Shown: positions 150-29,858 of the stretch, piece by piece
Layout: the number at the start of each line of letters is the position of its first letter
How positions within the stretch are numbered: the stretch's first letter is position 1
From: Anaeramoeba ignava BMAN
Lineage: Eukaryota > Protista > Anaeramoebae
Direction of reading: 5' to 3'
Length of the DNA stretch: 64,000 bases
Assembly: GCA_028826165.1 (NCBI GenBank)
Contig: JAPDFW010000058.1
Coordinates: 310,001-374,000, forward strand
Notes under the pieces: model-generated
What the model was told of the DNA's origin: nothing
The model's input: the letters and a program-made list of their open reading frames with translations, nothing else
Database searches by the model: none
Program-made: the position numbers and the translations under genes

Positions 150-1943
150 TTAATTTTGATTATTAAATTTGTTAATTAATAAATCAAATAAATTTGGATA
201 TGTTTGATTTAATTGAAAATAATCAATTCCAATTTCAATTTCATCAATTATTTCTTGTGTAATTTGAATTTCATCTTTAATTTGATTTGAATAAATCCAA
301 TATTCAAATATTTCAAATGATTTATTACTTAATTCACTATAATCTGTAACTTTATTTGATTTATCATTTGTTACAGATAAAAACATTCCTCGATATAATT
401 CACTTCTCATTATTAATATTAATTTAGGAAATTTATATTGTTTTTCTTTTCTTTCAATAATAAAATCTTTTTCATTTTCATTTTCATTTTCATTTAAATA
501 AATTCTTTTCATTGTTTCTTCAATTTTTTCATTTAAATTTATAATTTCTTTAATTTCAGAATATAATTTTGGATTTATTATTCTGTTTGAATAAATCATT
601 TCAAATATTTGATTTGATTCTTTAATTGATTTATTTGAAATAATTTCTTGAAGTTTTTCAATTTCATTTTCATTTTGATTTAATCTATATTTCAATATTA
701 ATTTATGAGCTTCAATTATTTCTCCATTTTTGGTTTTAAATGAAATATTACAAAATTCTTTTCTTCCAAATAATTTTATCAAATCTTCTTCAAGATTGGA
801 AAAAGGAGAAAGAAAAGGAGAATAATAAAGAAATGAATTAAAATCTCCACAAGAAAGATGATAATTAGAAATATCTTCATTAAATATTAATTTAGGAAGT
901 TCAATTTGAATTGGAATTGATTGATCTTTTGTATCTCCACTTCCTAATTCACCAAATAAATTATGTCCAAATCCAATTAATTTCCCATTTGATGTCAAAA
1001 TCAAACTATGAATATATCCAACTGAAAAATCAAGAATATTATTATCATTTTCAAATAAAGATGATTTGATTTCAGTAAATTCATAAGTATTTTCATCTTT
1101 GCCAAGTCCATTATATTGATAATTTCCGCATGAATAAAATTTTCTTTTTGGATTTTGATTTTCATCTTCATTTTCAATCAACATTATTGAGTGATCATAT
1201 CCACATTGAATATCAATTATTTTGCCTTTTGGAATATTTTGGATTTTGGTTAATTTTTGGATTTTAGTTTCTTTTCTTGATTCTCCTAATCCAAGTTGAC
1301 CATTATAATTTTCTCCGCATCCAAATAATTCTTGATTTGAATTTAAAAGAAAAACATGAATTGAACAATTTCCTGAAAATATTTTAGAAACATTTTTCAT
1401 CATTAAAATTGGTTTTTCTGTTTTTGGAAGTTTTTTAGAATCAAAACCAACTTGACCATAGTTATTTGAACCAATTCCATAAGCATTTTGATTTGAAGTT
1501 AATAAGTAAATTGAATTAGCTCCAGCAACAATATCTTGAATTATTCTATCATTTGTATCTTCAATTAATAATGAAATGTTGATAAATTCATTTGGATTAT
1601 TTGGATTAATATCTTTTCCTTTGGCAAATACATTTCTTTCTATTGTTAAAATAGCTTCATTTTCAAAACCAACAGTTACTTTTTGAATATTTTCTTCAAT
1701 TTGGATTTTTTCAGGATTTTGTTTTGAATATTTTAAATATTCTATTGCTTTTCCATTTTTAAAAAGGAAAATTGTTGAATTATCTCCTGTTGAAATTTGT
1801 TTAATTTGTTTTTCATTTTCATTTTCATTTTCATTTTCATTTTCATTTTCAAATTTAAATTGAATTGGTTTTATTATTTCTTTTGGTTCATTTTTGAAAA
1901 GTTTTGGATTTTCATTTGAACCAAAAAATAAAATTTCATTCAT
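150..1943 (-). CDS. RCC1-repeat beta-propeller + C-terminal tandem BTB/POZ protein, copy 1
   Basis: 597-aa ORF. RCC1 motifs G.N.YGQLG.G and I.CG..HS. BTB-like segments FCNISFKT..GEIIEAHKLIL and KDFII...YKFPKLILIMRSELYRGMF...FEYWIYS. Confidence 0.9.
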   Translation of the reverse strand: MNEILFFGSNENPKLFKNEPKEIIKPIQFKFENENENENENENEKQIKQISTGDNSTIFLFKNGKAIEYLKYSKQNPEKIQIEENIQKVTVGFENEAILTIERNVFAKGKDINPNNPNEFINISLLIEDTNDRIIQDIVAGANSIYLLTSNQNAYGIGSNNYGQVGFDSKKLPKTEKPILMMKNVSKIFSGNCSIHVFLLNSNQELFGCGENYNGQLGLGESRKETKIQKLTKIQNIPKGKIIDIQCGYDHSIMLIENEDENQNPKRKFYSCGNYQYNGLGKDENTYEFTEIKSSLFENDNNILDFSVGYIHSLILTSNGKLIGFGHNLFGELGSGDTKDQSIPIQIELPKLIFNEDISNYHLSCGDFNSFLYYSPFLSPFSNLEEDLIKLFGRKEFCNISFKTKNGEIIEAHKLILKYRLNQNENEIEKLQEIISNKSIKESNQIFEMIYSNRIINPKLYSEIKEIINLNEKIEETMKRIYLNENENENEKDFIIERKEKQYKFPKLILIMRSELYRGMFLSVTNDKSNKVTDYSELSNKSFEIFEYWIYSNQIKDEIQITQEIIDEIEIGIDYFQLNQTYPNLFDLLINKFNNQN

Positions 1944-1970
1944 TTTTGAAAAGAAAAAAATGAAAAAAAA
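1944..1970 (-). promoter_or_regulatory. Conserved upstream motif TTTTCATTTTTTTCTTTTCAAAA-ATG (candidate initiator/5' UTR)
   Basis: Near-identical in front of all seven RCC1-BTB starts. A similar TTTCATTTT is found upstream of most other genes in the window. Confidence 0.5.
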
Positions 1971-2033
1971 TTTTTGAATTTTAATTTTAATTTTAATTTT
2001 AAATTTGATTTTAATTTTAATTTTAATTTTAAT

Positions 2034-3788
2034 TTAATTATTAAATTTATTAATTAATAAATCAAATAAATTTGGATTTGTTTGATTTAATTGAAAATAA
2101 TCAATTCCAATTTGAATTTCATTAATGATTTCTTGTGTAATTTGAATTTCATCTTTAATTTGATTTGAATAAATCCAATATTCAAATATTTGAAATGATT
2201 TATTACTTAATTCACTATAATCTGTAACTTTATTAGAAGTATCATTTGTTACAGATAAAAACATTCCTCGATATAATTCACTTCTCATTATTAATATTAA
2301 TTTTGGAAATTTATATTGTTTTTCTTTTCTTTCAATTATGAAATCTTTTTCATTTTCGTTTTCATTTAAATAAATTCTTTTCATTGTTTCTTCAATTTTT
2401 TCATTTGAATTTATAATTTCTTTAATTTCTGAATATAATTCTGGATTTATTTTGGAATTGTTTGAATAAATCATTTCAAATATTTGATTTGATTCTTTAG
2501 TTGATTTTTTTGAAATAATTTCTTGAAGTTTTTCAATTTGATTTTGATTTTGATTTAATCTATATTTCAATATTAATTTATGAGCTTCAATTATTTCTCC
2601 ATTTTCTGTTTTAAATGAAATATCACAAAATTCTTTTCTTTCAAATAATTTTATCAAATCTTCTTCAAGATTGGAAAAAGAAAGAGGAGAATAATAAAGA
2701 AATGAATTGTGAAATCCACAAGAAAGATGATAATTAGAAATATCTTCATTAAATCTTAATTTAGGAAGTTCAATTTGAATTGGAATTAGTTGATTTTTTG
2801 TATTTCCAGTTCCTAATTGACCAGAAAAATTATTCCCAAATCCAATTAATTTCCCATTTGAAGTTAAAATCAAACTATGGAAATTTCCAACAGAAAAATC
2901 AAGAATAATATTATCATTTTCAAATAAAGATGATTTGATTTCAGTAAATTCATAAGTATTTCCATTTTTGCCAAGTCCATTATATCCAGAATATCCACAT
3001 GAATAAAGTTTTCTTTTTGGATTTTGATTTTCATTTTCAATCAACATTATTGGATGAATATTTCCACATTGAATATCAATTATTTTGCCTTTTGGAATAT
3101 TTTGAATTTTGGTTAATTTATTGATTTTTCTTTCTTTTATTGATTCTCCTAATCCAAGTTGACCATATTCGTTACCACCACATCCAAATAATTCTTGATT
3201 TGAATTTAAAAGAAAAACATGATTTGAAGAATTTCCTGAAAATATTTTAGAAACATTTTTCATCATTAAAATTGGTTTTTCTGTTTTTTTAAGTGTTTTA
3301 GAATCAAAACCAAGTTGACCAGAATCATTTGAACCAATTCCATAAGCATTATGATTTGAAGTTAATAAGTAAATTGAATTTCTTCCAGAAACAATATCTT
3401 GAATTATTCTATCATTTTATCTTCAATTAATGATGAAATATTGATAAATTTATTTGTATTTTTTGGATTAATATCTTTTCCTTTGGCAAATACATTTCTT
3501 TCTATTGTTAAAATAGCTTCATTATAATAACTAACAGTTACTTTTTGAATATTTTCTTCAATTTGGATTTTTTCAGGATTTGGATTTGAATATTTTAAAT
3601 ATTCTATTGCTTTTCCATTTTTCAAAAAGAAAAATTGTTGAAAAGTCACTTGATGAAATTTGTTTAATTTGTTTTTCATTTTCATTTTCATTTTCAAATT
3701 TAAATTGAGTTGGTTTTTTTATTTTATTTGATTCATTTTCGATAAGAGTTGGTTTTTTATTTCTTCCAAAAAATAAAATTTCATTCAT
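2034..3788 (-). pseudogene. RCC1-BTB copy 2, two frameshifts (pseudogene or assembly indels)
   Basis: Homologous protein is split over ORFs 3573..3788, 3404..3697 and 2034..3266. Versus sister copies there is an extra T in a T-run near 3620 and a missing G near 3418. Confidence 0.75.
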
Positions 3789-4067
3789 TTTTGAAAAGAA
3801 AAAAATGAAAAAAATAATTTTGGATTTTTATTTTAATTTTAATTTTGATTTTAATTTTGATTTTAATTTTGATTTTAATTTTAATTTTAATTTTAATTTT
3901 AATTTTGATTTAAATTTTAATTTTAATTTTAATTTTAATTTTTAATTTTGATTTTGATTTTGATTTTAATTTTAATTTTAATTTTGATTTTAATTTTAAT
4001 TTTAATTTTGATTTTGATTTTAATTTTAATTTTAATTTTGATTTTGATTTTAATTTTAATTTTAATT

Positions 4068-5861
4068 TTAATTTTTATTTTGATTTTGATTATTAAATTT
4101 GTTAATTAATAAATCAAATAAATTTGGATTTGTTTGATTTAATTGAAAATAATCAATTCCTGTTTCTATTTCATCAATTATTTCTTGTGTAATTTGAATT
4201 TCATTTTTAATTTGATTTGAATAAATCCAATATTCAAATATTTGAAATGATTTATTACTTAATTCACTATAATCTGTAACTTTATTAGAAGTATCTTCTG
4301 TAACAGATAAAAACATTCCTCGATATAATTCACTTCTCATTATTAATATTAATTTAGGAAATTTATATTGTTTTTCTTTTCTTTCAATTATAAAATCTTT
4401 TTCATTTTCATTTAAATAAATTCTTTTCATTGTTTCTTCTATTTTTTCATTGGAATTTATAATTTCTTTAATTTCAGAATATAATTTTGATTTTGTGCTT
4501 AATTTGTTTGAATAAATCATTTCAAATATTTGATTTGATTCTTTAGTTGATTTTTTTGAAATAATTTCTTGAAGTTTTTCAATTTGATTTTCATCTTTTA
4601 ATCTATATTTCAATATTAATTTATGAGCTTCAATTATTTCTCCATTTTCGGTTTTAAATGAAATATTACAAAATTCTTTTCTTCTAAATAATTTTATCAG
4701 ATCTTCTTCAAGATTGGAAAAAGAAAGAGAAGGAGAATAATAAAGAAATGAATTGCGTGCACCACAAGAAATATGATAATTAGAAATATTTTCATTAAAT
4801 CTTAATTTAGGAAGTTCAATTTCGTTTGGTTTCAGACGAATATTTGTATCTCCAGTTCCTAATTGACCATACCAATTATCTCCAAATCCAATTAATTTTC
4901 CTTTAGTTGTTAAAATCAAACTATATATATTTCCAACAGAAAAATCAAGAATATTATCATCATTTTCAAATAAAAATGATTTGATTTCAGTAAATTCATA
5001 AGTATTTTCATCTTTGCCAAGTCCATTGAATTGATAAAATCCACATGAATAAAGTTTTCTTTTTGGATTTTCATCTTCATTTTCAATCAACATTATTGAG
5101 TGATTACTTCCGCATTGAATATCAATTATTTTGCCTTTTGGAATATTTTGAATTTTGGTTAATTTTTGGATTTTTGTTTCTTCTCTTTTTGATTCTCCTA
5201 ATCCAAGTTGGCCACTCTTATTATCACCAAATCCAAATAATTCTTGATTTGAATTTAAAAGAAAAACATGATTTGAAGAATTTCCTGAAAATATTTTAGA
5301 AACATTTTTCATCATTAAAATTGGTTTTTCTGTTTTTTTAAGTGTTTTAGAATCAAAAACAAGTTCACCATAATAATTTAAACCAGTCCCATAAGCATTT
5401 TGATTTGAAGTTAATAAGTATAGTGAAAAAGCAGAACAAACAACATTTTCAATTATTCTATCATTTGTATCTTCAATTAATGATGAAATATTGATAAATT
5501 CATCTGGATTTTTTGGATCGATATATTCTCCTTTGGCAAATAAATTTCCTTCTAATGTTAAAATAGCTTCATTTGAAAAACCAACAGTTACTTTTTTGAT
5601 ATTTTCAATTTGAATTTTTTGAGGATTTTGAGTTGAATCTTGTAGATAACTTTCATTTAAATATTCTATTGCTTTTCCATTTTCAAAAAGGAAAATTGTT
5701 CCAAAGTCACTTGATGAAATTTGTTTAATTTGTTTTTCATTTTCATTTTCATTTTCATTTTCATTTTCAAATTTAAATTGAATTGGTTTTTTTATTTCTT
5801 CTGGTTTATTTTTGATAATAATTGGATGCTTATTTTTACCAAAAAATAAACAATCATTCAT
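4068..5861 (-). CDS. RCC1-BTB copy 3
   Basis: Intact 597-aa ORF collinear with copy 1. Confidence 0.9.
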   Translation of the reverse strand: MNDCLFFGKNKHPIIIKNKPEEIKKPIQFKFENENENENENEKQIKQISSSDFGTIFLFENGKAIEYLNESYLQDSTQNPQKIQIENIKKVTVGFSNEAILTLEGNLFAKGEYIDPKNPDEFINISSLIEDTNDRIIENVVCSAFSLYLLTSNQNAYGTGLNYYGELVFDSKTLKKTEKPILMMKNVSKIFSGNSSNHVFLLNSNQELFGFGDNKSGQLGLGESKREETKIQKLTKIQNIPKGKIIDIQCGSNHSIMLIENEDENPKRKLYSCGFYQFNGLGKDENTYEFTEIKSFLFENDDNILDFSVGNIYSLILTTKGKLIGFGDNWYGQLGTGDTNIRLKPNEIELPKLRFNENISNYHISCGARNSFLYYSPSLSFSNLEEDLIKLFRRKEFCNISFKTENGEIIEAHKLILKYRLKDENQIEKLQEIISKKSTKESNQIFEMIYSNKLSTKSKLYSEIKEIINSNEKIEETMKRIYLNENEKDFIIERKEKQYKFPKLILIMRSELYRGMFLSVTEDTSNKVTDYSELSNKSFQIFEYWIYSNQIKNEIQITQEIIDEIETGIDYFQLNQTNPNLFDLLINKFNNQNQNKN

Positions 5862-5894
5862 TTTGAAAAAGAAAAAAATGAAAAAAAATTTTTG

Positions 5895-6275
5895 GAATTT
5901 TAATTTTAATTTTAATTTTAATTTTAATTTTAATTTTAATTTTAATTTTAATTTTAATTTTAATTTTAATTTTAATTTTAATTTTAATTTTAATTTTAAT
6001 TTTAATTTTAATTTTAATTTTAATTTTAATTTTTAATTTTAATTTTAATTTTAATTTTAATTTTAATTTTGATTTTGATTTTAATTTTAATTTTAATTTT
6101 AATTTTAATTTTAATTTTAATTTTAATTTTTTTTATTTTTAATTTTAATTTTAATTTTTAATTTTGATTTTTGATTTTAATTTTAATTTTTAATTTTAAT
6201 TTTAAATTTTTTAATTTTGATTTTAATTTTAATTTTTAATTTTTTTAATTTTGATTTTGATTTTAATTTTGATTT
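5895..6275. repeat. (TTTTAA/TTTTGA)n microsatellite spacer; similar spacers at ~3830-4067, 8085-8407, 10245-10447 and 12260-12425 separate the RCC1-BTB copies
   Basis: Directly visible hexamer runs between every array member. Confidence 0.9.
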
Positions 6276-8042
6276 TATTAATTTTTTTTTGATAATTAAT
6301 AAATCAAATAAATTTGGATTTGTTTGATTTAATTGAAAATAATCAATTCCAGTTTGAATTTCATCAATTATTTCTTGTGTAATTTGAATATCTTCTTTGA
6401 TTTGATTTGAATAAATCCAATATTCTAATATTTGAAATGATTTATTACTTAATTCACTATAATCTGTAACTTTATTAGATTTATCTTCTGTAACAGATAA
6501 AAACATTCCTCGATATAATTCACTTCTCATTATTAATATTAATTTAGGAAATTTATATTGTTTTTCTTTTCTTTCAATTATGAAATCATTTTCATTTTCA
6601 TTTAAATAAATTCTTTTCATTGTTTCTTCAATTTTTTCATTGGAATTTATAATTTCTTTAATTTCTGAATATAATTTTGGATTTATTTTGGAATTGTTTG
6701 AATAAATCATTTCAAATATTTGATTTGATTCTTTAATTGATTTTTTTGAAATAATTTCTTGAAGTTTTTCAATTTCATTTTGATTTTCATCTTTTAATCT
6801 ATATTTCAATATTAATTTATGAGCTTCAATTATTTCTCCATTTTTTGTTTTAAATGAAATATCACAAAATTCTTTTCTTTTAAATAATTTTATCAAATCT
6901 TCTTCAAGATTGGAAAAAGAAGGATAAGAATAATAAAGAAATGAATTGTGAAATCCACAATAAACATGATAATTAGAAATATCTTCATTAAATCTTAATT
7001 TAGGAAGTTCAATTTGAATTGGAATTAATTGTTCATTTTTATCTCCATTTCCTAATTGACCAAAATAATTATATCCAAATCCTATTAATTTTGAATTGGA
7101 TGTTAAAATCAAAGTATGGAAATTTCCAACAGAAAAATCAAGAATATTATCATCATTTTCAAATAAAGATGATTTGATTTCAGTAAATTCATAAATATTT
7201 TCATCTTTGCCAAGTCCATTATATCCAGAATATCCACATGAATAAAGTTTTCTTTTTGGATTTTGATTTTCATCTTCATTTTCAATCAACATTATTGAAT
7301 GAATATTTCCACATTGAATATCAATTATTTTACCTTTTGGAATATTTTGGATTTTGGTTAATTTTTGGATTTTTGTTTCTTCTTTTCTTGATTCTCCTAA
7401 TCCAAGTTGATCATATTCGTTACCACCACATCCAAATAATTCTTGATTTGAATTTAAAAGAAAAACATGTTGTGAAGAATTTCCTGAAAATATTTTAGAA
7501 ACATTTTTCATCATTAAAATTGGTTTTTGTGTTTCTTTAAGTGTTACAGAATCAAAACCAAGTTGATTATAATAATTATCACCAATTCCATAAGCATTTT
7601 GATTTGAAGTTAATAAGTAAATTGAATCTCTTCCAGAAACAATATCTTGAATTATTCTATCATTTGTATCTTCAATTAATGATGAAATATTGATAAATCC
7701 TGTTTTTTTTTTTGGATTAATATATCTTCCTTTGGCAAATACATTTCCTTCTATTGTTAAAATAGCTTGATTTTGATCACCAATAGTTACTTTTTGAATA
7801 TTTTCTTTAATTTGTATTTTTGAAGGATTTTGTTTTGAATATTTTAAATATTCTATTGCTTTTCCATTTTCAAAAAGGAAAATTGTTGAATAATCTTTTG
7901 ATGAAATTTGTTTAATTTGTTTTTCATTTTCATTTTCATTTTCATTTTCAAATTTAAATTGAATTGGTTTTATTATTTTTTGTGGTTTATTTTTTATAAA
8001 TTTTGGTTTTATATTTCTTCCAAAAAATAAAATTTCATTCAT
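6183..8042 (-). CDS. RCC1-BTB copy 4 (true start ATG 8042; C-terminus probably extended by a homopolymer indel near 6285)
   Basis: MNEILFFG start at 8042 matches sister copies; the ORF-track extension to 8381 is only the TTTTAA microsatellite. Removing one base from the T-run at ~6282-6290 gives a stop at about the same place as in other copies. Confidence 0.85.
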   Translation of the reverse strand: MNEILFFGRNIKPKFIKNKPQKIIKPIQFKFENENENENEKQIKQISSKDYSTIFLFENGKAIEYLKYSKQNPSKIQIKENIQKVTIGDQNQAILTIEGNVFAKGRYINPKKKTGFINISSLIEDTNDRIIQDIVSGRDSIYLLTSNQNAYGIGDNYYNQLGFDSVTLKETQKPILMMKNVSKIFSGNSSQHVFLLNSNQELFGCGGNEYDQLGLGESRKEETKIQKLTKIQNIPKGKIIDIQCGNIHSIMLIENEDENQNPKRKLYSCGYSGYNGLGKDENIYEFTEIKSSLFENDDNILDFSVGNFHTLILTSNSKLIGFGYNYFGQLGNGDKNEQLIPIQIELPKLRFNEDISNYHVYCGFHNSFLYYSYPSFSNLEEDLIKLFKRKEFCDISFKTKNGEIIEAHKLILKYRLKDENQNEIEKLQEIISKKSIKESNQIFEMIYSNNSKINPKLYSEIKEIINSNEKIEETMKRIYLNENENDFIIERKEKQYKFPKLILIMRSELYRGMFLSVTEDKSNKVTDYSELSNKSFQILEYWIYSNQIKEDIQITQEIIDEIQTGIDYFQLNQTNPNLFDLLIIKKKLIKSKLKSKSKLKKLKIKIKIKIKKFKIKIKN

Positions 8043-8407
8043 TTTTGAAAAGAAAAAAATGAAAAAATGAATTTTGGATTTTGGATTTTTAATTTTAATT
8101 TTAATTTTAATTTTGATTTTTAATTTTAATTTTAATTTTAATTTTAATTTTAATTTTAAATTTGATTTTAATTTTAATTTTGATTTTAATTTTGATTTTG
8201 ATTTTAATTTTAATTTTAATTTTAATTTTGATTTTAATTTTGATTTTAATTTTAATTTTAATTTTAATTTTAATTTTAATTTTGATTTTAATTTTAATTT
8301 TAATTTGATTTTAATTTTTGATTTTAATTTTAATTTTAATTTTAATTTTATTTTAATTTTAAATTTCAATTTTAATTTCAATTTTAAATTTAATTTTAAT
8401 TTTAATT

Positions 8408-10204
8408 TTAATTTTGATTATTAAATTTATTAATTAATAAATCAAATAAATTTGGATTTGTTTGATTTAATTGAAAATAATCAATTCCTGTTTCTAATTC
8501 ATCAATAATTTCTTGTGTAATTTGAATTTCATCTTTAATTTGATTTGAATAAATCCAATATTCAAATATTTGAAATGATTTATTACTTAATTCACTATAA
8601 TCTGTAACTTTATTTGAAGTATCTTCAGTTACAGATAAAAACATTCCTCGATATAATTCACTTCTCATTATTAATATTAATTTAGGAAATTTATATTGTT
8701 TTTCTTTTCTTTCAATTATAAAATCTTTTTCATTTTCATTTTCATTTTCATTTTCATTTAAATAAATTCTTTTCATTGTTTCTTCAATTTTTTCATTTGA
8801 ATTTATAATTTCTTTGATTTCTGAATATAATTCTGGATTTATTATTCTGTTTGAATAAATCATTTCAAATATTTGATTAGATTCTTTAATTGATTTATTT
8901 GAAATAATTTCTTGAAGTTTTTCAATTTCATTTTGATTTTCATCTTTTAATCTATATTTCAATATTAATTTATGAGCTTCAATTATTTCTCCATTTTTGG
9001 TTTTAAATGAAATATCACAAAATTCTTTTCTTTCAAATAATTTTATCAAATCTTCTTCAAGATTGGAAAAAGAAGGATAAGAATAATAAAGAAATGAATT
9101 GTGAAATCCACAATAAACATGATAATTAGAAATATCTTCATTAAATCTTAATTTAGGAAGTTCAATTTGAATTGGAATTAATTGTTCATTTTTATATTCA
9201 GTTCCTAATTGACCAAAATAATTATATCCAAATCCTATTAATTTTGAATTGGATGTTAAAATCAAAGTATGGGAATAACCAACAGAAAAATCAAGAATAT
9301 CATCATTTTCAAATAAAGATGATTTGATTTCAGTAAATTCATAAATATTTCCATTTTTGCCAAGTCCATTATATCCAGAATATCCACATGAATAAAGTTT
9401 TCTTTTTGGATTTTGATTTTGATCTTCATTTTCAATCAACATTATTGAATGAATATTTCCACATTGAATATCAATTATTTTACCTTTTGGAGTATTTTGG
9501 ATTTTGGTTAATTTTTGGATTTTTGTTTCTTCTTTTCTTGATTCTCCTAATCCAAGTTGATCATATTCGTTACCACCACATCCAAATAATTCTTGATTTG
9601 AATTTAAAAGAAAAACATGTTGTGAAGAATTTCCTGAAAATATTTTAGAAACATTTTTCATCATTAAAATTGGTTTTTGTGTTTCTTTAAGTGTTACAGA
9701 ATCAAAACCAAGTTGATTATAATAATTATCACCAATTCCATAAGCATTTTGATTTGAAGTTAATAAATAAATTGAATCTCTTCCAGAAACAATATCTTGA
9801 ATTATTCTATCATTTGTATCTTCAATTAATGATGAAATATTGATAAATCCTGTTTTTTTTTTTGGATTAATATCTTTTCCTTTGGCAAATACATTTCCTT
9901 CTATTGTTAAAATAGCTTGATTTTGATCACCAATAGTTACTTTTTGAATATTTTCTTCAATTTGTATTTTTGAAGGATTTTGTTTTGAATTTCTTTGATT
10001 TAAATATTCTATTGCTTTTCCATTTTTAAAAAGGAAAATTGTTGCAAAGTCACTTGATGAAATTTGTTTAATTTGTTTTTCATTTTCATTTTCATTTTCA
10101 TTTTCATTTTCAAATTTAAATTGAATTGGTTTTATTATTTTTTGTGGTTTATTTTTTATAAATTTTGGTTTTATATTTCTTCCAAAAAATAAAATTTCAT
10201 TCAT
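8408..10204 (-). CDS. RCC1-BTB copy 5
   Basis: Intact 598-aa ORF, very similar to copy 4 over most of the RCC1 region. Confidence 0.9.
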   Translation of the reverse strand: MNEILFFGRNIKPKFIKNKPQKIIKPIQFKFENENENENENEKQIKQISSSDFATIFLFKNGKAIEYLNQRNSKQNPSKIQIEENIQKVTIGDQNQAILTIEGNVFAKGKDINPKKKTGFINISSLIEDTNDRIIQDIVSGRDSIYLLTSNQNAYGIGDNYYNQLGFDSVTLKETQKPILMMKNVSKIFSGNSSQHVFLLNSNQELFGCGGNEYDQLGLGESRKEETKIQKLTKIQNTPKGKIIDIQCGNIHSIMLIENEDQNQNPKRKLYSCGYSGYNGLGKNGNIYEFTEIKSSLFENDDILDFSVGYSHTLILTSNSKLIGFGYNYFGQLGTEYKNEQLIPIQIELPKLRFNEDISNYHVYCGFHNSFLYYSYPSFSNLEEDLIKLFERKEFCDISFKTKNGEIIEAHKLILKYRLKDENQNEIEKLQEIISNKSIKESNQIFEMIYSNRIINPELYSEIKEIINSNEKIEETMKRIYLNENENENENEKDFIIERKEKQYKFPKLILIMRSELYRGMFLSVTEDTSNKVTDYSELSNKSFQIFEYWIYSNQIKDEIQITQEIIDELETGIDYFQLNQTNPNLFDLLINKFNNQN

Positions 10205-10447
10205 TTTTGAAAAGAAAAAAATGAAAAAATGAATTTTGGATTTTGGATTTTAATTTTAATTTTAATTTTGATTTTAATTTTGATTTTAATTTTAATTTAA
10301 ATTTGAATTTAATATTAATTTTAATTTTAATTTTAATATTAATTTTGATTTTAATTTTAATTTTAATTTTTAATTTAATTTTAATTTTTAATTTAAATTT
10401 TAATATTAATTTTAATTTTAATTTTAATTTTGATTTTAATTTTGATT

Positions 10448-12225
10448 TTAATTTTGATTATTAAATTTATTAATTAATAAATCAAATAAATTTGGATTTG
10501 TTTGATTTAATTGAAAATAATCAATTCCTTTTTGAATTTCATTAATAATTTCTTGTGTAATTTGGATTTCTTCTTTGATTTGATTTGAATAAATCCAATA
10601 TTCAAATATTTGAAATGATTTATTACTTAATTCACTATAATCTGTAACTTTATTTGAAGTATCTTCAGTTACAGATAAAAACATTCCTCGATATAATTCA
10701 CTTCTCATTATTAATATTAATTTTGGAAATTTATATTTCTTTTCTTTTCTTTCAATTATAAAATCTTTTTCATTTTCATTTAAATAAATTCTTTTCATTG
10801 TTTCTTCAATTTTTTCATTTAAATTTATAATTTCTTTAATTTCTGAATATAATTTTGGATTTATTATTCTGTTTGAATAAATCATTTCAAATATTTGATT
10901 TGATTCTTTAATTGATTTATTTGAAATAATTTCTTGAAGTTTTTCAATTTCATTTTGATTTTCATCTTTTAATCTATATTTCAATATTAATTTATGAGCT
11001 TCAATTATTTCTCCATTTTCGGTTTTAAATGAAATATTGCAAAATTCTTTTCTTTAGATAATTTTATCAAATCTTCTTCAAGATTGGAAAAAGAAAGAGA
11101 ATAATAAAGAAATGAATTATCATTTCCACAAGAAATATGATAATTAGAAATATCTTCATTAAATCTTAATTTAGGAAGTTCAATTTGAATTGGAATTAAA
11201 TCATTTTCTGTTGTATATCCAGTTCCTAATTCACCAGAAGAATTTGAACCAAATCCAATTAATTTTGAATTGGAAGTTAAAATCAAAGTATGAAAACATC
11301 CAACAGAAAAATCAAGAATATTATCATCATTTTCAAATAAAGATGATTTGATTTCAGTAAATTCATAAGTATCTTTGGTTTTGCCAAGTCCATTGAAAAA
11401 ATATCTTCCACATGAATAAAGTTTTCTTTTTGGATTTTCATTTTCATTTTCAATCAACATTACTGAATAAGCATATCCACATTGAATATCAATTATTTTA
11501 CCTTTTGGAATATTTTGGATTTGTGTTAATTTTTGGATTTTTTTTTCTTTTATTGATTCTCCTAATCCAAGTTGACCAAATTGATTATCACCACATCCAA
11601 ATAATTCTTGATTTGAATTTAAAAGAAAAACATGATAAGAAGAATTTCCTGAAAATATTTTAGAAACATTTTTCATCATTAAAATTGGTTTTTCTGTTTT
11701 TTTAAGTGTTTTAGAATCAAAACCAAGTTGTTCATCTTGATTTGAACCAATTCCATAAGCATTTTGATTTGAAGTTAATAAGTAAATTGAATTAAATCCA
11801 GAAACAATATCTTCAATTATTTTATCATTTGTATCTTCAATTAATGATGAAATATTGATAAATTCATTTGGATTTTTTGGATTAATATATTCTCCTTTGG
11901 CAAATACATTTCTTTCTATTGTTAAAATAGCTTCATTTTCATAACCAACAGTTACTTTTTGAATATTTTCTTCAATTTGGATTTTTTCAGGATTTTGATT
12001 TGGATATTTTTCATTTAAATATTCTATTGCTTTTCCATTTTTAAAAAGGAAAATTGTTGAAAAAAAGCATGATGAAATTTGTTTAATTTGTTTTTCATTT
12101 TCATTTTCATTTTCATTTTCATTTTCATTTTCAAATTTAAATTGAATTGGTTTTATTATTATATCTGTTTCATTTTTAATAAGAATTGGCTCTTGATTTG
12201 AACCAAAAAATAAATAATCATTCAT
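10448..12225 (-). pseudogene. RCC1-BTB copy 6, one frameshift near 11055
   Basis: ORF 11005..12225 (RCC1 part) and ORF 10448..10984 (BTB part) are in different frames. One base is missing at EEDLIKL(F)-RKEF relative to other copies. Confidence 0.75.
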
Positions 12226-12425
12226 TTTTGAAAAGAAAAAAATGAAAAAATGAATTTTGGAATTTTAATTTTAATTTTAATTTTAATTTTAATTTTAATT
12301 TTGATTTTAATTTTAATTTTAATTTAAATTAAATTTTAATTTTAATTTTGAATTTGATTTTAATTTTAATTTAAATTTTAATTTTAATATTGATTTAAAT
12401 TTTAATTTTGATTTTAATTTTGATT

Positions 12426-14210
12426 TTAATTTTGATTTTGATTATTAAATTTATTAATTAATAAATCAAATAAATTTGGATTTGTTTGATTTAATTGAAA
12501 ATAATCAATTCCAGTTTGAATTTCATTAATAATTTCTTGTGTAATTTGAATTTCATCTTTAATTTGATTTGAATAAATCCAATATTCAAATATTTGAAAT
12601 GATTTATTACTTAATTCACTATAATCTGTAACTTTATTAGATTTATCTTCTGTTACAGATAAAAACATTCCTCGATATAATTCACTTCTCATTATTAATA
12701 TTAATTTAGGAAATTTATATTGTTTTTCTTTTCTTTCAATTATAAAATCTTTTTCATTTTCATTTTCATTTTCATTTAAATAAATTCTTTTCATTGTTTC
12801 TTCAATTTTTTCATTTGAATTTATAATTTCTTTAATTTCAGAATATAATTTTGGATTTATAATTCTGTTTGAATAAATCATTTCAAATATTTGATTTGAT
12901 TCTTTAATTGATTTTTTTGAAATAATTTCTTGAAGTTTTTCAATTTGATTTTGATTTTGATTTAATCTATATTTCAATATTAATTTATGAGCTTCAATTA
13001 TTTCTCCATTTTCTGTTTTAAATGAAATATTACAAAATTCTTTTCTTTCAAATAATTTTATCAAATCTTCTTCAAGATTGGAAAAAGAAGAAGGAGAATA
13101 ATAAAGGAATGAAGTGCCAACTCCACAAGAAACATGATAATTAGAAATATTTTCATTAAATCTTAATTTAGGAAGTTCAATTTGAATTGGAATAAATTGA
13201 TATTCTTCTATATCTCCAGTTCCTAATTGACCATAATTATTATATCCAGATCCTATTAATTTTGAATTGGATGTTAAAATCAAAGTATGGGAATATCCAA
13301 CAGAAAAATCAAGAATATTATCATCATTATTTTCAAATAAAGATGATTTGATTTCAGTAAATTCATAAGTATTTTCATTTTTGCCAAGTCCATTATATCC
13401 AGAAAATCCACATGAATAAAGTTTTCTTTTTAGATTTTCATTTTGATCTTCATCTTCAATCAACATTACTGAGTGAAAATTTCCACATTGAATATCAATT
13501 ATTTTGCCTTTTGGAATATTTTGAATTTTGGTTAATTTTGGATTTTTCTTTCTTTTCTTCTTGATTCTCCTAATCCAAGTTGACCATATATATTATATCC
13601 GCATCCAAATAATTCTTGATTTGAATTTAAAAGAAAAACAGAACTTGAAAAGTTTCCTGAAAATATTTTAGAAACATTTTTCATCATTAAAATTGGTTTT
13701 TCTGTTTTTGGAAGTGTTTCAGAATCAAATCCAAGTTGACAATATTGATTTAAACCAATTCCATAAGCATTTTGATTTGAAGTTAATAAGTAAATTGAAT
13801 CTCTTCCAGAAACAACATCTTGAATTATTCTATCATTTGTATCTTCAATTAATGATGAAATATTGATGAATTGATTTGGATTATTTTGGATTAATATCTT
13901 TTCCTTTGGCAAATACATTTCCTTCTTTTGTTAAAATAGCTTCATTTCGATAACCAACAGTTACTTTTTGAATATTTTTTTCAATTTGGATTTTATAAGG
14001 ATTTTGTTTTGAATTTCTTTGATTTAAATATTCTATTGCTTTTCCATTTTTAAAAAGGAAAATTGTTGCAAAGTCACTTGATGAAATTTGTTTAATTTGT
14101 TTTTCATTTTCATTTTCAAATTTAAATTGAATTGGTTTTTTTATTTTTTTTGATTTATTTTTGAAAAGTTTTGGGTATTGATTTCTTCCAAAAAATAAAA
14201 TTTCATTCAT
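12426..14210 (-). pseudogene. RCC1-BTB copy 7, two frameshifts (near 13887 and 13538)
   Basis: Split over ORFs 13881..14210, 13532..13918 and 12426..13466. Both indels are in T-runs. Confidence 0.75.
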
Positions 14211-14272: not shown

Positions 14273-16711
14273 TTAATTTTCGAAAATTAAATCAATTATT
14301 GAATTTTGATTTAATTGATAATAATCTTTTAAATCTTCAAATTCTTCGATAATTTCTTGCTTAATTTCTTTTTCAAATTCATCATGATAAAGAAAATAAA
14401 TTAATTCTTGAATTGTTTCAAATGATTTTCCTGAATAATCATGAACTTGATTCGAGGAATCTTCAACACTCAAAAACATTCCTTTGAATAATTCACTTCT
14501 CATTATTAACACTAATTTATGAACTTTGATTTCTTTTTCATCTTCTTCACAAATTATTGCAAAATCTTTCGTTTCATTTTGTTGATATAATTTATCAAAA
14601 TCTTTTAGTATTCCCTTCCTTCCTTTTTTTGATTCGAACCATTCCGAATCAAATCCTAATTCTTTAAAAAATTCTTCAATAATTGGTTTTTCTTGATCAT
14701 TTTTCTTGATATTTTTTATTGGAATTAGAATTTCCTTTCTTCTTTTTTCAAAATCACTCCATTCAATTCTGTATGAATTGCGTTCATTTCGAAGGGTTTC
14801 AAATTGATTGCATAAATCATTAAAAGTACTAAATTTTGTTGCGAAATTATCAAAATCAGGAAAGCCTGTATAAAGAAAATTCAAAGCAAATTGAACAATT
14901 TCTTTTGGTTTTTGTTGGCAAATATCAACAAAGTTTTGCAAAGTTTTTTCATCGTTATCAAATCTTGATAAAAGAATTGATTTGTGAACTGGAAATTTGA
15001 AGAAATCCTTTGATTCAATTTGATAATCGGAAAAATCTGTTGATTTCAATAAATTGTTCATATCTTCATTAAATGAATAAATTTTAGGAAAAAACTCATA
15101 AATTTCTTGTATATTTTCCCTATCTGGTAAATGAAATAAATTCGCATCGTTCATCATAAAAAACTTCACCAACTTAAAGTATTTTCTTGATTTCGCCAAA
15201 AATAAAACAATTCCACTATTTTTGCTTTTCAAATCTATATCAACTCCCTTTTCAACTAAGTATTTGGCAATTTCAAACAATTTTTCTTCGTGATCTTGTG
15301 AGTATTGGTTTCTAAAAAAATAATGCAAAAGTGATTCATTGTCAGTACTTTTTGCATTAACATCTGCTCCTTTTTCAACTAAATATTTGATGATTTCAAC
15401 TAAATTTTGATGTTGAGTTTCTTTTCGGAAATTGCAAGCATAATGCAAAGGTGTTTGATCTATTTGATTTTTTGCATTAATATCAGCTCCTTTTCCAATT
15501 AGATATTTGATTGTTTCGATTGAATTTGAGTTTTGATTTTGGCAAACTAAATGCAAAGGAGTTTCTTTTTTATTGTTTTTTGCATTAATATTTGCTCCTT
15601 TTTCAATTAGATATTTGATTGTTTCAAATGAATTTGAATTTGGATTTTGGAAATAGTATTGAAAAGAGTAAAACAAAGGTGTTTCATTATCCTTATTTTG
15701 TGCATTTAAATCACAACCTTTTCCAATTAGATATTTGATTGTTTCAAATGAATTTGAGTTTTGTTTTCGACAAACTAAATGCAGAGGAGTTTCATTTTTA
15801 TTATTTTGTGAATTCAAATCACAACCTTTTTCAATTAGATATTTGATTGCTTCAAAAGAATTTGAGTTTTGATTTTGGAAATAGTATTGAAAAGAGTAAA
15901 ACAAAGGTGTTTCATTATCCTTGTTTTTTGCATTCAAATCACAACCTTTTCCAATTAGATATTTCATAATTCCAAAAGAATTTGAATTTGGATTTCGACA
16001 AACTAAATGCAAAGGAGTTTCATTTTTATTATTTTGTGAATTCAAATCACAACCTTTTTCAATTAGATATTTGATTACTTCAAAAGAATTTGAGTTTTGA
16101 TTTTGGAAATAGTATTGAAAAGAGTAAAACAAAGGTGTTTCATTTTTATTGTTTTTTTCATTTAAATCACAACCTTTTTCAATAAGATATTTGATAATTT
16201 CAAATGAATTTGAGTTTTGATTTTGACAAAATAAATGTAAAGGAGTTTCATTGTTAGTGTTTTTTGCATTCAAATCAGAACCTTTTTCAATAAGATATTT
16301 CATAATTTCAAAAGAATTTGAATTTGGGTTTTTGTTTTGGTTTTGACAAAATAAAAGTAAAGGAGTTTCATTTGCAAAAGTTTTTTGATTTAAATCAGAA
16401 CCTTTTTCAATAAGATATTTGATAACTTCAAAAGAATTTGAGTTTTTGTTTTGATTTTGACAAAATAAAAGTAAAGGAGTTTCATTTGCAAAAGTTTTTG
16501 CATTCACATTAAGACCCTTTTCAATAAGATATTTGATAATTTCAAATGAATCTTCTTTTTTTTGAAATTTGCAAATTAAATGTAAAGGAGTTTGAAAAAT
16601 TGAATTTTTAATTGTAATATCTGCACCATTTTCTATTAAGGTTTTTATTTCTTTTATTGAACCATTTTGACAAGCTGAAAACAATTTTCGATTTTTTTCG
16701 TTTTGATTCAT
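14273..16711 (-). CDS. Ankyrin-repeat + C-terminal tandem BTB/POZ protein
   Basis: 812 aa with about 13-14 ankyrin repeats (ETPLHL.C...EIIKYLIEKG.D.NAKN). Then FSDYQI...FPVHKSILLSR and KDFAII...VHKLVLIMRSELFKGMF BTB segments. Confidence 0.9.
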   Translation of the reverse strand: MNQNEKNRKLFSACQNGSIKEIKTLIENGADITIKNSIFQTPLHLICKFQKKEDSFEIIKYLIEKGLNVNAKTFANETPLLLFCQNQNKNSNSFEVIKYLIEKGSDLNQKTFANETPLLLFCQNQNKNPNSNSFEIMKYLIEKGSDLNAKNTNNETPLHLFCQNQNSNSFEIIKYLIEKGCDLNEKNNKNETPLFYSFQYYFQNQNSNSFEVIKYLIEKGCDLNSQNNKNETPLHLVCRNPNSNSFGIMKYLIGKGCDLNAKNKDNETPLFYSFQYYFQNQNSNSFEAIKYLIEKGCDLNSQNNKNETPLHLVCRKQNSNSFETIKYLIGKGCDLNAQNKDNETPLFYSFQYYFQNPNSNSFETIKYLIEKGANINAKNNKKETPLHLVCQNQNSNSIETIKYLIGKGADINAKNQIDQTPLHYACNFRKETQHQNLVEIIKYLVEKGADVNAKSTDNESLLHYFFRNQYSQDHEEKLFEIAKYLVEKGVDIDLKSKNSGIVLFLAKSRKYFKLVKFFMMNDANLFHLPDRENIQEIYEFFPKIYSFNEDMNNLLKSTDFSDYQIESKDFFKFPVHKSILLSRFDNDEKTLQNFVDICQQKPKEIVQFALNFLYTGFPDFDNFATKFSTFNDLCNQFETLRNERNSYRIEWSDFEKRRKEILIPIKNIKKNDQEKPIIEEFFKELGFDSEWFESKKGRKGILKDFDKLYQQNETKDFAIICEEDEKEIKVHKLVLIMRSELFKGMFLSVEDSSNQVHDYSGKSFETIQELIYFLYHDEFEKEIKQEIIEEFEDLKDYYQLNQNSIIDLIFEN

Positions 16712-16825: not shown

Positions 16826-19800
16826 TTAATTCTTTTCAAAGAAATTGAATTGTTTTCCAAATTTTTCCAAAAGAATTTCTTTTAATTTTTTGTAAGAAAT
16901 TTTTAAGTCATCATTAACTAATATTTGGTCAAAATGTTGAGGATTTTTTTCTGAAAATTCGATTTCTTTTTTTGCATTTTCCAATCTTTCATTAATTTTT
17001 TCATCAGATTCAGTTCTTCTTCCTCTTAATCTTCTTTCAAGTTCTTCAAATGAAGGAGGTAATAAGAAAATTGAAAAAGATTTAAAATCGGATTTTTTCA
17101 AGTTAATTGCTCCTTTAATACTGACATCCATAATAGAAATTTGTCCATTTTTAGTTATTCTTTCAATTTCTGATTTACTTGTTCCATAAAAATTGGAATG
17201 AACTTCATCGAATTCGAGCATTTCATTGTTTTCAATTTTTTCTTTCATCTTTTTTACAATTGATATAAAATTGATATAAAATTGAATTAAAATTGAATTA
17301 AAATTGAATTAAAATTGAATTAAAATTGAATTAAAAGAATTAAAATTGAATTAAAATTGATTTAAAATTTAATTAAAATTTAATTAAAATTTAATTAAAA
17401 TTTAATTAAAATTAATATAAAATTGATATAAAATTGATTTAAAATTAATTAAAATTGATATAAAATTGATTTAAAATTGATTTAAAATTGATATAAAATT
17501 GATTTAAAATTAATATAAAATTAATATAAAATTAATATAAAATTAATATAAAATTAATATAAAATTAATATAAAATTAATATAAAATTGATATAAAATTG
17601 ATATAAAATTAATTTAAAATTGATATAAAATTGATTTAAAATTGATATAAAATTGATATAAAATTGATTTAAAATTGATATAAAATTAATTTAAAATTGA
17701 TATAAAATTGATTTAAAATTGATATAAAATTAATTTAAAATTGATATAAAATTGATATAATTCTAAAATTGATTTAAAATTGATATAAAATTGATATAAA
17801 AATTGATTTAAAATTGATTTAAAATTGATTTAAAATTGATATAAAATTGATTTAAAATTGATTTAAAATTGATTTAAAATTGATTTAAAATTAATATAAA
17901 ATTTAATTAAAATTGATTTAAAATTGATTTAAAATTAATATAAAATTGATATAAAATTGATATAAAATTGATATAAAATTGATATAAAATTGATATAAAA
18001 TTGATATAAAATTGATTTAAAATTGATTTAAAATTAATATAAAATTGATTTAAAATTGATTTAAAATTGATATAAAAATTGATATAAAATTGATTTAAAA
18101 TTGATATAAAAATTGATTTTAAAATTGATTTAAAATTGATATAAAATTGATATAAAATTGATTTAAAATTGATATAAAATTGATTTAAAATTGATATAAA
18201 ATTGATATAAAAATTAATATAAAATTAATTTAAAATTGATATAAAATTGATATAAAATTAATATAAAATTAATATAAAATTGATATAAAAAAAATTTAAA
18301 ATTAATTTAAAATTGATTTAAAATTGATTTAAAATTGATTTAAAATTGATATAAAATTGATTTAAAATTGATTTAAAATTGATTTAAAATTAATTTAAAA
18401 TTGATATAAAATTGATTTAAAATTGATATAAAATTGAATTAAAATTAATATAAAATTGATTTAAAATTAATATAAAATTGATTTAAAATTGATATAAAAT
18501 TAATTTTAAAATTGAATTAAAATTGATATAAAATTAATATAAAATTGATATAAAATTGATTTAAAATTGATATAAAATTGATATAAAATTGATTTAAAAA
18601 TTGATTTAAAATTGATTTAAAATTTATTTAAAATTGATATAAAATTGATTTAAAATTGATTTAAAATTGATTTAAAATTGATTTAAAAATTGATTTAAAA
18701 TTGATTTAAAATTAATATAAAATTGATATAAATTAATATAAAATTGATATAAAATTGATATAAAAATTGATATAAAAATTAATTTAAAATTGATATAAAA
18801 TTGATTTAAAATTAATTTAAAATTGATATAAAATTGATATAAAATTGATTTAAAATTGATTTAAAATTAATATAAAATTGATTTAAAATTGATTTAAAAT
18901 TGATTTAAAATTGATATAAAATTGATATAAAATTGATTTAAAATTGATATAAAATTAATATAAAATTGATATAAAATTGATATAAAAATTGATTTAAAAT
19001 TAATATAAAATTGATATAAAATTGATATATAAAAATTGATTTAAAATTGATTTAAAATTAATATAAAATTGATATAAAATTGATATAAAATTAATTTAAA
19101 ATTGATTTAAAATTGATTTAAAATTGATTTAAAATTGATATAAAATTGATATAAAATTAATATAAAATTGATATAAAATTGATTTAAAATTGATTTAAAA
19201 TTGATTTAAAATTGATTTAAAATTGATATAAAATTGATATAAAATTGATTTAAAATTGATTTAAAAATTGATATAAAATTGATTTAAAATTGATTTAAAA
19301 TTGATATAAAATTGATATAAAATTGATTTAAAATTGATATAAAATTGATATAAAATTGATTTAAAATTGATATAAAATTGATTTAAAATTGATATAAAAT
19401 TAATATAAAATTGATTTAAAATTAAAATTTTAAAATTGATATAAAATTGATATAAAATTGATATAAAATTGATATAAAATTGATATAAAATTGATATAAA
19501 ATTGATTTAAAATGACTTAAAATTGATATAAAATTGATATAAAATTGATTTAAAATTGATATAAAATTGATATAAAATTGATATAAAATTGATATAAAAT
19601 TAATATAAAATTAATATAAAATTAATATAAAATTAAATTAAAATTGATTTAAAATTAATTTAAAATTTAATTAAAATTGATATAAAATTGATTTAAAATT
19701 GATTTAAAATTGATTTAAAATTGATTTAAAATTGATATAAAATTGATATAAAATTAATATAAAATTAATTGATATAAAATTGATATAAAATTGATATAAA

Positions 19801-20181
19801 ATTGATATAAAATTAATATAAAATTGATATAAAATTGATATAAAATAGATATAAAATTAATTAAAATTAATTAAAATTGATATAAAATTGATATAAAATT
19901 GATTTAAAATTAATTTAAAATTGATTTAAAATTTATTTAAAAATGTTTTAAATGTTTTTAAATTTGTTTAGAATTAAAATTTGTTAAAAATCTACTTGTT
20001 CTTTCGTTATAAAATAATAATGTTTGCCATCAACTTCATTTCCTCTAAGAGAACGAGTTGTATGAGAAATTGAAAAAGAAAATTTAGAAGGAAAAGTTCG
20101 TAAAAATTCATTTGCTAAAGTACTTTTACCAACACCAGAAGGACCAACAAAAATTAACATAGAAATTAGATTCTCAACCAT
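16826..20181 (-). CDS. GUK1: Guanylate kinase, 2 exons (20181..19996, 17248..16826)
   Basis: Exon 1 has the P-loop GPSGVGKST and SHTTR...EVDGKHYYF. Exon 2 has VHSNFYGTS, LPPSFEELERRLRGR.TES and LVNDDL. A phase-0 GT..AG intron 19995..17249 joins KEQ|MKEK in frame. Confidence 0.92.
17260..19940. repeat. Intronic 11-bp tandem satellite (AAAATTGATWT and AAAATTAATAT variants), ~2.7 kb
   Basis: Directly visible; fills almost the whole guanylate kinase intron. Confidence 0.95.
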
Positions 20182-29215: not shown

Positions 29216-29858
29216 ATCAATAAGTGAATTTTGCTAATTATAAATTAATAATAAATTTATATTTAATTTTGATATTTTTATATTAAATTTTGTTATTTAA
29301 ATTAACTTAAATTAGTTTAATGGCAAATTAATAATAAATTTATATTTAAATTTCAAATATAAATTTAATTTGCTTTTTTTTTGGAATTAAAAAAAGAAGA
29401 AGAAATGATCATTTGATCAATTTGATCCCAATTAAAATTTAATTAAAAAAAATAACTTATTTTGTTTTATTAAATTATCTACAACTATTGAATTAAAAAA
29501 AAATATTAGAATAAGTTTCTTAAATAAAAGAAAAAAAGGGTTCTTTTTCTATTTATAATTTTCCTTTTTGTTCTTTTTATTTAAATTAATTAATAATAAA
29601 AATTTGATCAATTTTCTGTTTAAAAGAATTATTTAATTTTTAAATTTATTTTTATTTAATTTTTAATTATTTTTAAATTGTTTTTTAATTGTTTTTGATC
29701 GTAAAAAATTAATTATATTTGAAGTATTCAAAATTAAAAAAATTTTAAATTAAGAAGGAAAAATATTTTTTTTTGTAAAATCATTATTCTTTTTAATTCT
29801 TTATTTTTCTAAGTTACTTCATCTTTTTTTTTTAGTTTTTTTGAATTTGATTTTTTAA

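Follow-up and report, generated by a model that had tools for sequence, protein, structure and literature searches.

Hypervariable RCC1-Propeller/BTB Genes of Anaeramoeba ignava: A Tandem Array from a Very Large, Recombining Family of Probable Cullin-3 Substrate Receptors

A Candidate Repertoire of Cullin-3 Substrate Receptors

The 64,000-nucleotide stretch of the Anaeramoeba ignava BMAN genome analyzed here (the window), which lies on contig 59 of a 42.8-Mb assembly, contains at positions 150–14210 seven tandem units on the minus strand, arranged head-to-tail and about 1.8 kb each, that encode an RCC1-type propeller followed by a double BTB tail. This array is a cluster from a very large, recently expanded and recombining family of probable CUL3 substrate receptors. 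The analysis of copies from the window and from the rest of the genome showed that about 40 loop codons are kept hypervariable by diversifying selection. According to the proposed mechanism, each gene would supply a seven-bladed RCC1-like propeller on a constant BTB-BTB tail; the variable propeller face would bind diverse protein targets, and the second BTB domain would dock on Cullin-3 of the organism through the H2/H5 site. Each copy would then act as the substrate receptor of a Cullin-3–RING ubiquitin ligase (CRL3), and the family would represent more than 1,000 specificities encoded in the germline. Non-self or fast-evolving proteins, such as the products of prey, symbionts, viruses or mobile elements, would be the most likely targets, although this is a guess. 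A more far-reaching version is put forward tentatively and with somewhat more doubt than belief, namely, an intracellular antibody-like system in which more than 1,000 germline-encoded, shuffled propeller binders wired to Cullin-3 would tag foreign proteins for ubiquitination, with a prenylated subset patrolling membranes. The setting for the proposed recognition system would be a free-living, symbiont-bearing anaerobic amoeba.

Diversifying Selection and Recombination

The preliminary description of this DNA had reported seven copies that differ at the same few columns of each RCC1 blade on a near-identical framework with a constant BTB tail. All five quoted motifs were recovered in the translations, namely, CG[YD/NI/SN/NI/NI/YA]H/Y, SVG[YI/NF/NI/NF/YS/CF/YS], CG[DFN/FHN/ARN/FHN/FHN/NDN/VGT]SF, G[ENYN/GNEY/DNKS/GNEY/GNEY/DNQF/YNIY] and CG[NYQY/YSGY/FYQF/YSGY/YSGY/RYFF/FSGY]NGLG. 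The constancy of the framework and tail was borne out by a codon alignment of 51 distinct intact coding sequences taken from the window and 50 genomic loci (594 columns): 259 of the 594 columns were invariant and the tail (amino acids 380–597) was almost invariant, while in about 35 columns the entropy was above 2 bits and as many as 15 residue types occurred. Pairwise estimates by the Nei–Gojobori method gave a synonymous divergence (dS) of about 0.085 and a nonsynonymous divergence (dN) of 0.032 for the framework, with a dN/dS ratio (omega) of 0.37; omega was 0.35 for the tail and 1.07 for the whole propeller. The scaffold and the tail are under purifying selection.

Selection at individual codons was evaluated in 20 sister pairs of a FastTree tree, used as phylogenetically independent comparisons and complemented by cross-validation, and a codon was considered significant when its nonsynonymous changes exceeded the synonymous background at a Bonferroni-corrected p < 0.01. 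A significant excess was found at 41 codons, 40 of which lie in the propeller, and these codons had accumulated 5–7 times the change allowed by the background (typically 17–32 changes, with about 4 expected). For the columns named in the preliminary description, which had been read there as diversifying, 18 pairs free of window copies were used to avoid circularity, and the reading held up: 289 nonsynonymous differences were counted, with 52 expected (Poisson p ~ 5 × 10−113), and dN was 0.69, corresponding to an omega of about 8 relative to the background dS (0.087) and of about 2.1 relative to dS within the same codons (0.32). When sites were chosen on half of the pairs and measured on the other half, omega was 8.7 and 1.9 for the background and in-codon dS, respectively. 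At the selected sites, Tyr was enriched 4.6-fold, Arg 4.4-fold and Asp 2-fold, Trp was almost confined to these sites, and Ser was likewise abundant at the variable sites, whereas Ile, Leu, Gly, Pro and Val were depleted.

The repertoire was assessed in a sample of 141 distinct genomic and database copies, each of which (141 of 141) had a unique signature over 40 sites. Copies differed from one another at 77% of the selected sites versus 11.5% of sites elsewhere, and this difference was uncorrelated with divergence of the framework (r = 0.08). Residues in different loops showed no association beyond 3 residues. The nucleotide tree was star-like and poorly supported, yet many synonymous variants were present at intermediate frequency. 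Linkage disequilibrium (LD) among 180 common variants fell to an r2 of 0.026 (about 1/n) beyond 10 nt, and all four gametes were observed in 96% of the site pairs; therefore, the family acts like a freely recombining population. These sequence patterns indicate that gene conversion or recombination between paralogues is pervasive and shuffles the loops.

Against this background, an origin of the variability mainly in targeted mutation of the loop codons (programmed hypermutation or templated cassettes), with selection in a minor role, is improbable. Such an origin would agree with the synonymous diversity, which is 2.5–4 times higher inside the variable codons and within three codons of them, and with the synonymous variants that travel with the adjacent variable residue (z of 3.8 at a distance of one codon and no association beyond about three), suggesting very short exchanged tracts. 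However, the same pattern is expected for alleles long kept under diversifying selection when LD is gone by about 10 nt, and it is consistent with the transfer of old loop alleles in very short cassettes under such selection. Moreover, there is a strong bias toward residues of the binding type, variation is greater at codon positions 1 and 2 (0.56 and 0.47) than at position 3 (0.31), and neither a reverse transcriptase nor a template was seen in the array, where none was specifically looked for. A mechanism of the diversity-generating-retroelement type was rejected: the variation extends to all three codon positions and to more than one type of base, and the array showed no sign of a template or a reverse transcriptase.

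Protein Architecture and Location of the Variable Sites

Pfam searches were performed with array copies c1, c3 and c5 (numbered as in Table 1). The profile PF25390 (WD40_RLD) scored 214–223 bits in c1 and c5 (cut-off 150) and 134.2 bits, under the cut-off, in c3, whereas PF00415 and PF13540 were above their cut-offs in all three copies. In the AlphaFold2 (AF2) model of c1 (mean predicted local distance difference test score, pLDDT, 88.6; predicted template modeling score, pTM, 0.81), amino acids 1–375 form a seven-bladed propeller of 28 strands, the last blade of which is completed by the N-terminal strands. Foldseek matched the propeller with those of RPGR, RCC1, HERC2 and UVR8 (E-values of about 1 × 10−24 to 1 × 10−19); the values for the RCC1-like domain (RLD) of RPGR, RCC1 and the RLDs of HERC2 were 2 × 10−24 to 1 × 10−22, and the Ran–RCC1 complex (1i2m) was among the fold matches. 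Amino acids 376–490 form a BTB-like helical domain without strand B3, for which the BTB score was marginal (20.7 bits versus the cut-off of 20.5), and amino acids 491–597 form a complete BTB domain (B1-B2-A1-A2-B3-A3-A4-A5 in the model; 25–40 bits, and 25.3 bits when the halves of the tail were searched apart). No signal peptide-like N-terminus was recognized on reading the sequence, and the protein is predicted to be cytosolic. A lysine-rich CaaX box (…KCLIF) ends 19 of the 141 family members, none of them in the window, where the copies have ends of the …KFNNQN type; prenylation and membrane attachment are predicted for this CLIF subset.

Because the loops of a four-stranded antiparallel blade lie alternately on one and the other face of the propeller, the variable sites were assigned to faces by loop parity from the strands of the AF2 model, which makes the test topological and not distance-based. 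The loops between strands 1 and 2 ('G-x-x-H') contained 14 variable sites and those between strands 3 and 4 ('G-x-N-x-x-G-Q-L-G') contained 17, these two loop types spanning all seven blades; with 6 further sites in the adjoining strand ends, 37 of the 40 propeller sites were on one face. Loops of the opposite parity held one site (31:1 for top versus bottom loops, Fisher p = 2.7 × 10−9). The model topology shows the variable codons to lie on one face of the predicted propeller, as the preliminary description had anticipated. An excess of nonsynonymous change restricted to one contiguous surface of a constrained scaffold is the pattern that characterizes a diversified recognition repertoire of the kind encoded by immune-type multigene families. 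The best sequence match in the PDB was UVR8 (E-value = 4 × 10−32), in which residues 310 and 311 align with the W and R of the GWRHT motifs; the Trp and Arg of these motifs are located on the interaction surface of UVR8.

The RCC1-like domains of UVR8, RCC1, RPGR and HERC2 share the seven-bladed fold with the array family, but in those proteins the corresponding face is kept constant to serve a single partner or function, whereas in the array family that face varies; therefore, the members of the family cannot share a function as Ran guanine nucleotide exchange factor (GEF) or as photoreceptor. The feature expected of a Ran-GEF of the RCC1 type, a conserved GTPase-contacting face, was not found: the loops of that face are precisely the hypervariable ones, and the family as a whole therefore cannot share one GTPase partner. 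A different possibility is that the propellers regulate endogenous partners or serve as adaptors for them, for example the greatly expanded small-GTPase families of Anaeramoeba, and co-diversify with these partners instead of recognizing foreign proteins. RCC1-like domains bind GTPases on the same face, as in the Ran–RCC1 fold match, one annotated family member (P0018) is fused to a Ras-type domain, and large Rab/TBC expansions in Anaeramoeba were reported in the genome paper (PMC11550330). Nevertheless, more than 1,100 unique, near-randomized faces, an omega of about 8 and free shuffling are a misfit for stable conserved pairings, and conservation is lacking in the array family precisely at the face with which RCC1 contacts Ran, so that only a small chance is given to this possibility.

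Predicted Link to Cullin-3

Several cullins were found in the A. ignava genome and, compared with solved structures, one was Cul1/2-like, three or four were Cul4-like and two were Cul1-like. A tandem pair of Cul1-like paralogues is situated on contig 57. A locus on contig 58 (L053, about 18.9–23.9 kb) best matched human CUL3 (428 bits versus 363 bits for CUL4). This Cul3 gene consists of several exons, the first two pieces that code for the N-terminus lying about 2.5 kb apart, and its annotated product (P0272, 736 amino acids), named 'cullin-3a-related', is present in the transcriptome-derived EukProt set. Co-folding was performed with the tail (amino acids 376–597) and residues 1–380 of P0272 as annotated in the database. 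The score was 0.64 (0.63–0.70 in three runs), whereas the controls scored 0.00–0.02, the best of them 0.02; among 78 solved complexes, 51 attain the mark applied, as do 2 of 108 mismatched pairs. The runs shared at least 81% of the contacts, and the pLDDT of the partner was at least 87. The modeled interface connects residues 515–537 and 574–577 of the second BTB domain with residues 42–59 and 110–121 of Cul3, which corresponds to the canonical H2/H5 site, and 15 of the 17 predicted contact residues were invariant across the 141 copies. The residues V524-T525-E526 occupy a phi-x-E-like position, the motif of the BTB loop in contact with Cul3, tentatively assigned by alignment to KLHL/SPOP-type sequences; Glu is present there in 68% of the 141 copies and Asn in 28%, including c1. 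On the basis of this model, the second BTB domain probably docks on Cullin-3.

Several observations weigh against the interpretation of the family as CUL3 substrate receptors. No match to BACK was found in Pfam, and the protein ends at the BTB helix 585–596 without a 3-box or BACK domain; these elements commonly follow the BTB domain of CUL3 adaptors and enhance affinity, but they are not universal. The Glu of the phi-x-E-like position is replaced by Asn in 28% of the copies. The binding of Cul3 is a modeled one, and the high co-folding score may reflect likeness rather than binding because BTB–Cul3 complexes are well represented among solved structures. Three of the seven array copies are frameshifted, and the raised synonymous diversity at and around the variable codons leaves room for a local mutational process behind the variability. 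Finally, no EukProt (transcriptome) source was found for the main-family proteins looked at, although such a source is present for Cul3 and for two small sister subfamilies; the weight of these missing entries is weak because short-read assembly of more than 1,000 paralogues is unreliable. The proposal in the preliminary description that the copies are CUL3 substrate receptors finds partial support in the predicted docking at the canonical site (0.64 versus 0.02) and is weakened by the missing 3-box/BACK and by the modeled nature of the binding.

The same two shortcomings, together with the CaaX box CLIF in 19 of the 141 copies, also speak for a binding repertoire that operates without CUL3-dependent ubiquitination. 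The double BTB tail would in that case serve for oligomerization or scaffolding, and the propellers would sequester or cluster their targets or recruit them to membranes via the prenylated subset; BTB domains commonly self-associate. Such a repertoire is considered rather unlikely, since the predicted Cul3 contacts are invariant across the 141 copies, the modeled docking follows the canonical H2/H5 geometry (0.00–0.02 for the controls), and a Cul3 orthologue is present.

Size and Distribution of the Family

The closest database proteins were all from A. ignava (Metamonada), were 81–85% identical to the array proteins and were annotated as RCC1 and BTB. A protein search of the assembly revealed at least 73 full-length copies on many contigs, with 83–87% identity to c1. 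Two 30-nt motifs that were invariant in the codon alignment were then counted genome-wide with at most 2 mismatches allowed: the motif in the BTB tail occurred 1,332 times and that in the propeller 1,143 times, whereas the reversed controls gave 0 matches. The family consists of about 1,100–1,300 copies and occupies roughly 5–6% of the 42.8-Mb genome, as follows from these counts and a length of about 2 kb per unit. The preliminary description was correct about the seven local copies but missed the genome-wide scale of more than 1,100 copies, the double BTB tail and the recombinational shuffling.

The large number of copies could also be attributed to selfish or neutral amplification of the gene with its satellite spacer by unequal crossing-over, in which case the loop variation would represent relaxed constraint. 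The (AAAATY)n satellite that ends each unit could drive unequal exchange, and three of the seven array copies are broken; however, dN several-fold above dS is impossible under relaxed constraint, purifying selection acts on both the scaffold and the tail (omega of 0.35–0.45), and practically all of the 73 genomic copies with the best matches have open frames. Amplification of this kind is accordingly regarded as very improbable. The fraction of pseudogenes refers to this window (3 of 7) and to a best-hit set that is biased. The classification of copies with a single TAA as pseudogenes was rejected, the internal 'stops' being natural terminators.

More distant full-length relatives that were looked up (34–60% identity) were all from A. 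ignava as well. The nearest A. flamelloides protein of the same architecture was only 27% identical to a sister subfamily, and therefore the architecture is older and the burst of expansion appears, as far as the sequence data reach, to be specific to A. ignava. The lateral gene transfer (LGT) table of the genome paper holds RCC1-type PANTHER names, mainly for A. flamelloides (PMC11550330). It was rejected as a record of the array family, the counts of RCC1-type PANTHER names being 0–2 for A. ignava versus 16–35 for A. flamelloides. The main text of that paper mentions neither RCC1 nor BTB (PMC11550330), and a literature search found no paper combining 'Anaeramoeba' with 'RCC1' or 'BTB'.

Comparison with Known Systems

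Among the known families, MATH-BTB (BATH) proteins are described as CUL3 substrate adaptors that have expanded in grasses (PMC4091423). Like the array family, they represent a lineage-specific expansion of BTB proteins in which diversification is centered in the substrate-binding domain, but this domain is MATH and not an RCC1 propeller, the members number from tens to about 100 versus more than 1,100, and the copies are far more diverged, without a near-invariant scaffold bearing about 40 near-randomized positions. Positive selection in nematode and plant MATH-BTB families, as well as the idea that they target foreign proteins, was reportedly described by Thomas in 2006. The animal proteins RCBTB1, RCBTB2 and IBtk have the domain order of the array family, with the BTB domains located after an RCC1-like propeller; one weak match of a sister subfamily was a protein from a sea star named 'RCC1 and BTB domain-containing protein 1-like', and A. 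ignava copies carry PANTHER-derived names such as 'btk-binding protein-related'. Unlike the array family, RCBTB1, RCBTB2 and IBtk are single-copy and conserved, and their identity to it is 24–28%, at which orthology is not established; we know of no hypervariable face in these proteins.

The combination of a constant signaling or E3 module with a recognition domain whose surface loops are under diversifying selection is characteristic of the B30.2 E3 ligases fish finTRIM and primate TRIM5 and of fungal NOD-like receptors (NLRs) with hypervariable WD40, ANK or TPR repeats, such as HNWD of Podospora, and the fungal NLRs likewise have a beta-propeller face and recombinational shuffling. These systems differ from the array family in their folds and effector modules, and their copy numbers are one to two orders lower. 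To our knowledge, no system of the finTRIM, TRIM5 or HNWD type has been reported from Metamonada. Massively expanded genes for F-box and BTB-box, ubiquitination-related effectors have been described in amoeba-associated Chlamydiae (PMC4209131). Those effectors are bacterial and host-directed, whereas the array family consists of host nuclear genes in an AT-rich eukaryotic context with their own promoter-like element.

Expanded and positively selected families of ubiquitin-ligase adaptors are already known, and what is new here is the RCC1 propeller as the variable recognition module, which has no known precedent, and the scale, with more than 1,100 copies on about 5–6% of the genome and about 40 near-randomized positions on one face of a near-invariant scaffold. 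If the proposed function is true, no known E3-receptor repertoire would be larger than this family, and none before it would have had an RCC1 propeller as the variable module. If expressed and able to bind Cul3, the copies would make up a natural 'binder library' coupled to degradation, which would have implications for the control of prey, symbionts and parasites by unicellular eukaryotes; the scaffold would also be of interest for engineered targeted degradation.

Array, Spacers and Neighboring Sequence

The coordinates of the array copies and adjoining features are given in Table 1. The report of a seven-copy array in the preliminary description holds for the seven units, but only four of their frames are open (c1, c3, c4 and c5), and three (c2, c6 and c7) are frameshifted by 1-nt indels. 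The spacers between the units are 60–360 bp long, and the pairwise nucleotide identity among the copies is 90–94%, reaching 97% for c4 and c5. Despite its breaks, c2 retains a loop set of its own (NI, YSGY, NF and FHN). Most of the frameshifts are probably real because a plain change in homopolymer length accounts for only one of the five 1-nt indels; homopolymer assembly errors were rejected as the general explanation. The usual C-terminus is missing from c4, where a 7-nt insertion close to the 3′ end has put an extension rich in Lys, Leu and Ile in its place. At positions 6183–8424, the c4 frame continues both upstream and downstream into sequence of low complexity (Lys/Leu/Ile) that the satellite spacer encodes, and a 116-codon open reading frame (ORF) of Phe/Asn/Asp repeats is present on the opposite strand; both the run-ons and this 116-aa ORF are probably repeat artifacts and not genes.

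Table 1. Coordinates of the array copies, the domains of c1 and adjoining features in the window (nt, nucleotides; aa, amino acids).
Feature	Position (nt)	Strand	Description
c1	150..1943	−	Intact, 597 aa; ORF; Pfam WD40_RLD 214 bits, RCC1 and BTB; AF2 model, pLDDT 88.6
c1, propeller	819–1943		aa 1–375; RCC1-like, 7-blade
c1, first BTB-like domain	474–818		aa 376–490
c1, second BTB domain	153–473		aa 491–597
c2	2034..3788	−	Broken (+1 insertion, −1 deletion); ATG at 3788; from DNA alignment of the seven units
Spacer (example)	3789..4067	−	(AAAATT/AAAATC)n satellite, then, before ATG, conserved T-rich element (about 35 nt, two TCA motifs)
c3	4068..5861	−	Intact, 597 aa; most divergent copy within the array (nt identity to the other copies about 90%)
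c4	6183..8042	−	Open frame, 619 aa; sister of c5 (97% nt identity)
c5	8408..10204	−	Intact, 598 aa
c6	10448..12225	−	Broken; 1-nt deletion at the propeller/tail junction
c7	12426..14210	−	Broken (+1 and −1 indels)
Ankyrin-repeat and BTB gene	14273..16711	−	812 aa; adjoins the array; terminal BTB 52% identical to the second BTB of the array family

A common unit structure was found at 51 copies genome-wide in the anchored consensus of 51 upstream and downstream flanks: the (AAAATY)n satellite starts at the stop codon of each unit, and the T-rich element is located immediately 5′ of the ATG. The T-rich/TCA element is possibly a core promoter of the initiator type, a suggestion based on what is known of metamonad promoters, and the satellite may be a substrate that favors unequal exchange.

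The ankyrin-repeat and BTB gene next to the array is part of a separate, older family with dozens of copies (50–60% identity). The tail of the array family is thus combined with at least two kinds of repeat 'heads', the recent burst being limited to the RCC1 family. Farther along, at positions 16826–17248 of the minus strand, the match of a 140-aa ORF to guanylate kinase is confined to the C-terminal two thirds (positions 59–180 of 182 in Pfam), and the remaining part presumably lies beyond an intron. The G+C content falls to 7–8% at positions 18001–20000 and 28001–30000, and the former segment has a GC skew of +0.96 and is therefore simple-sequence DNA.

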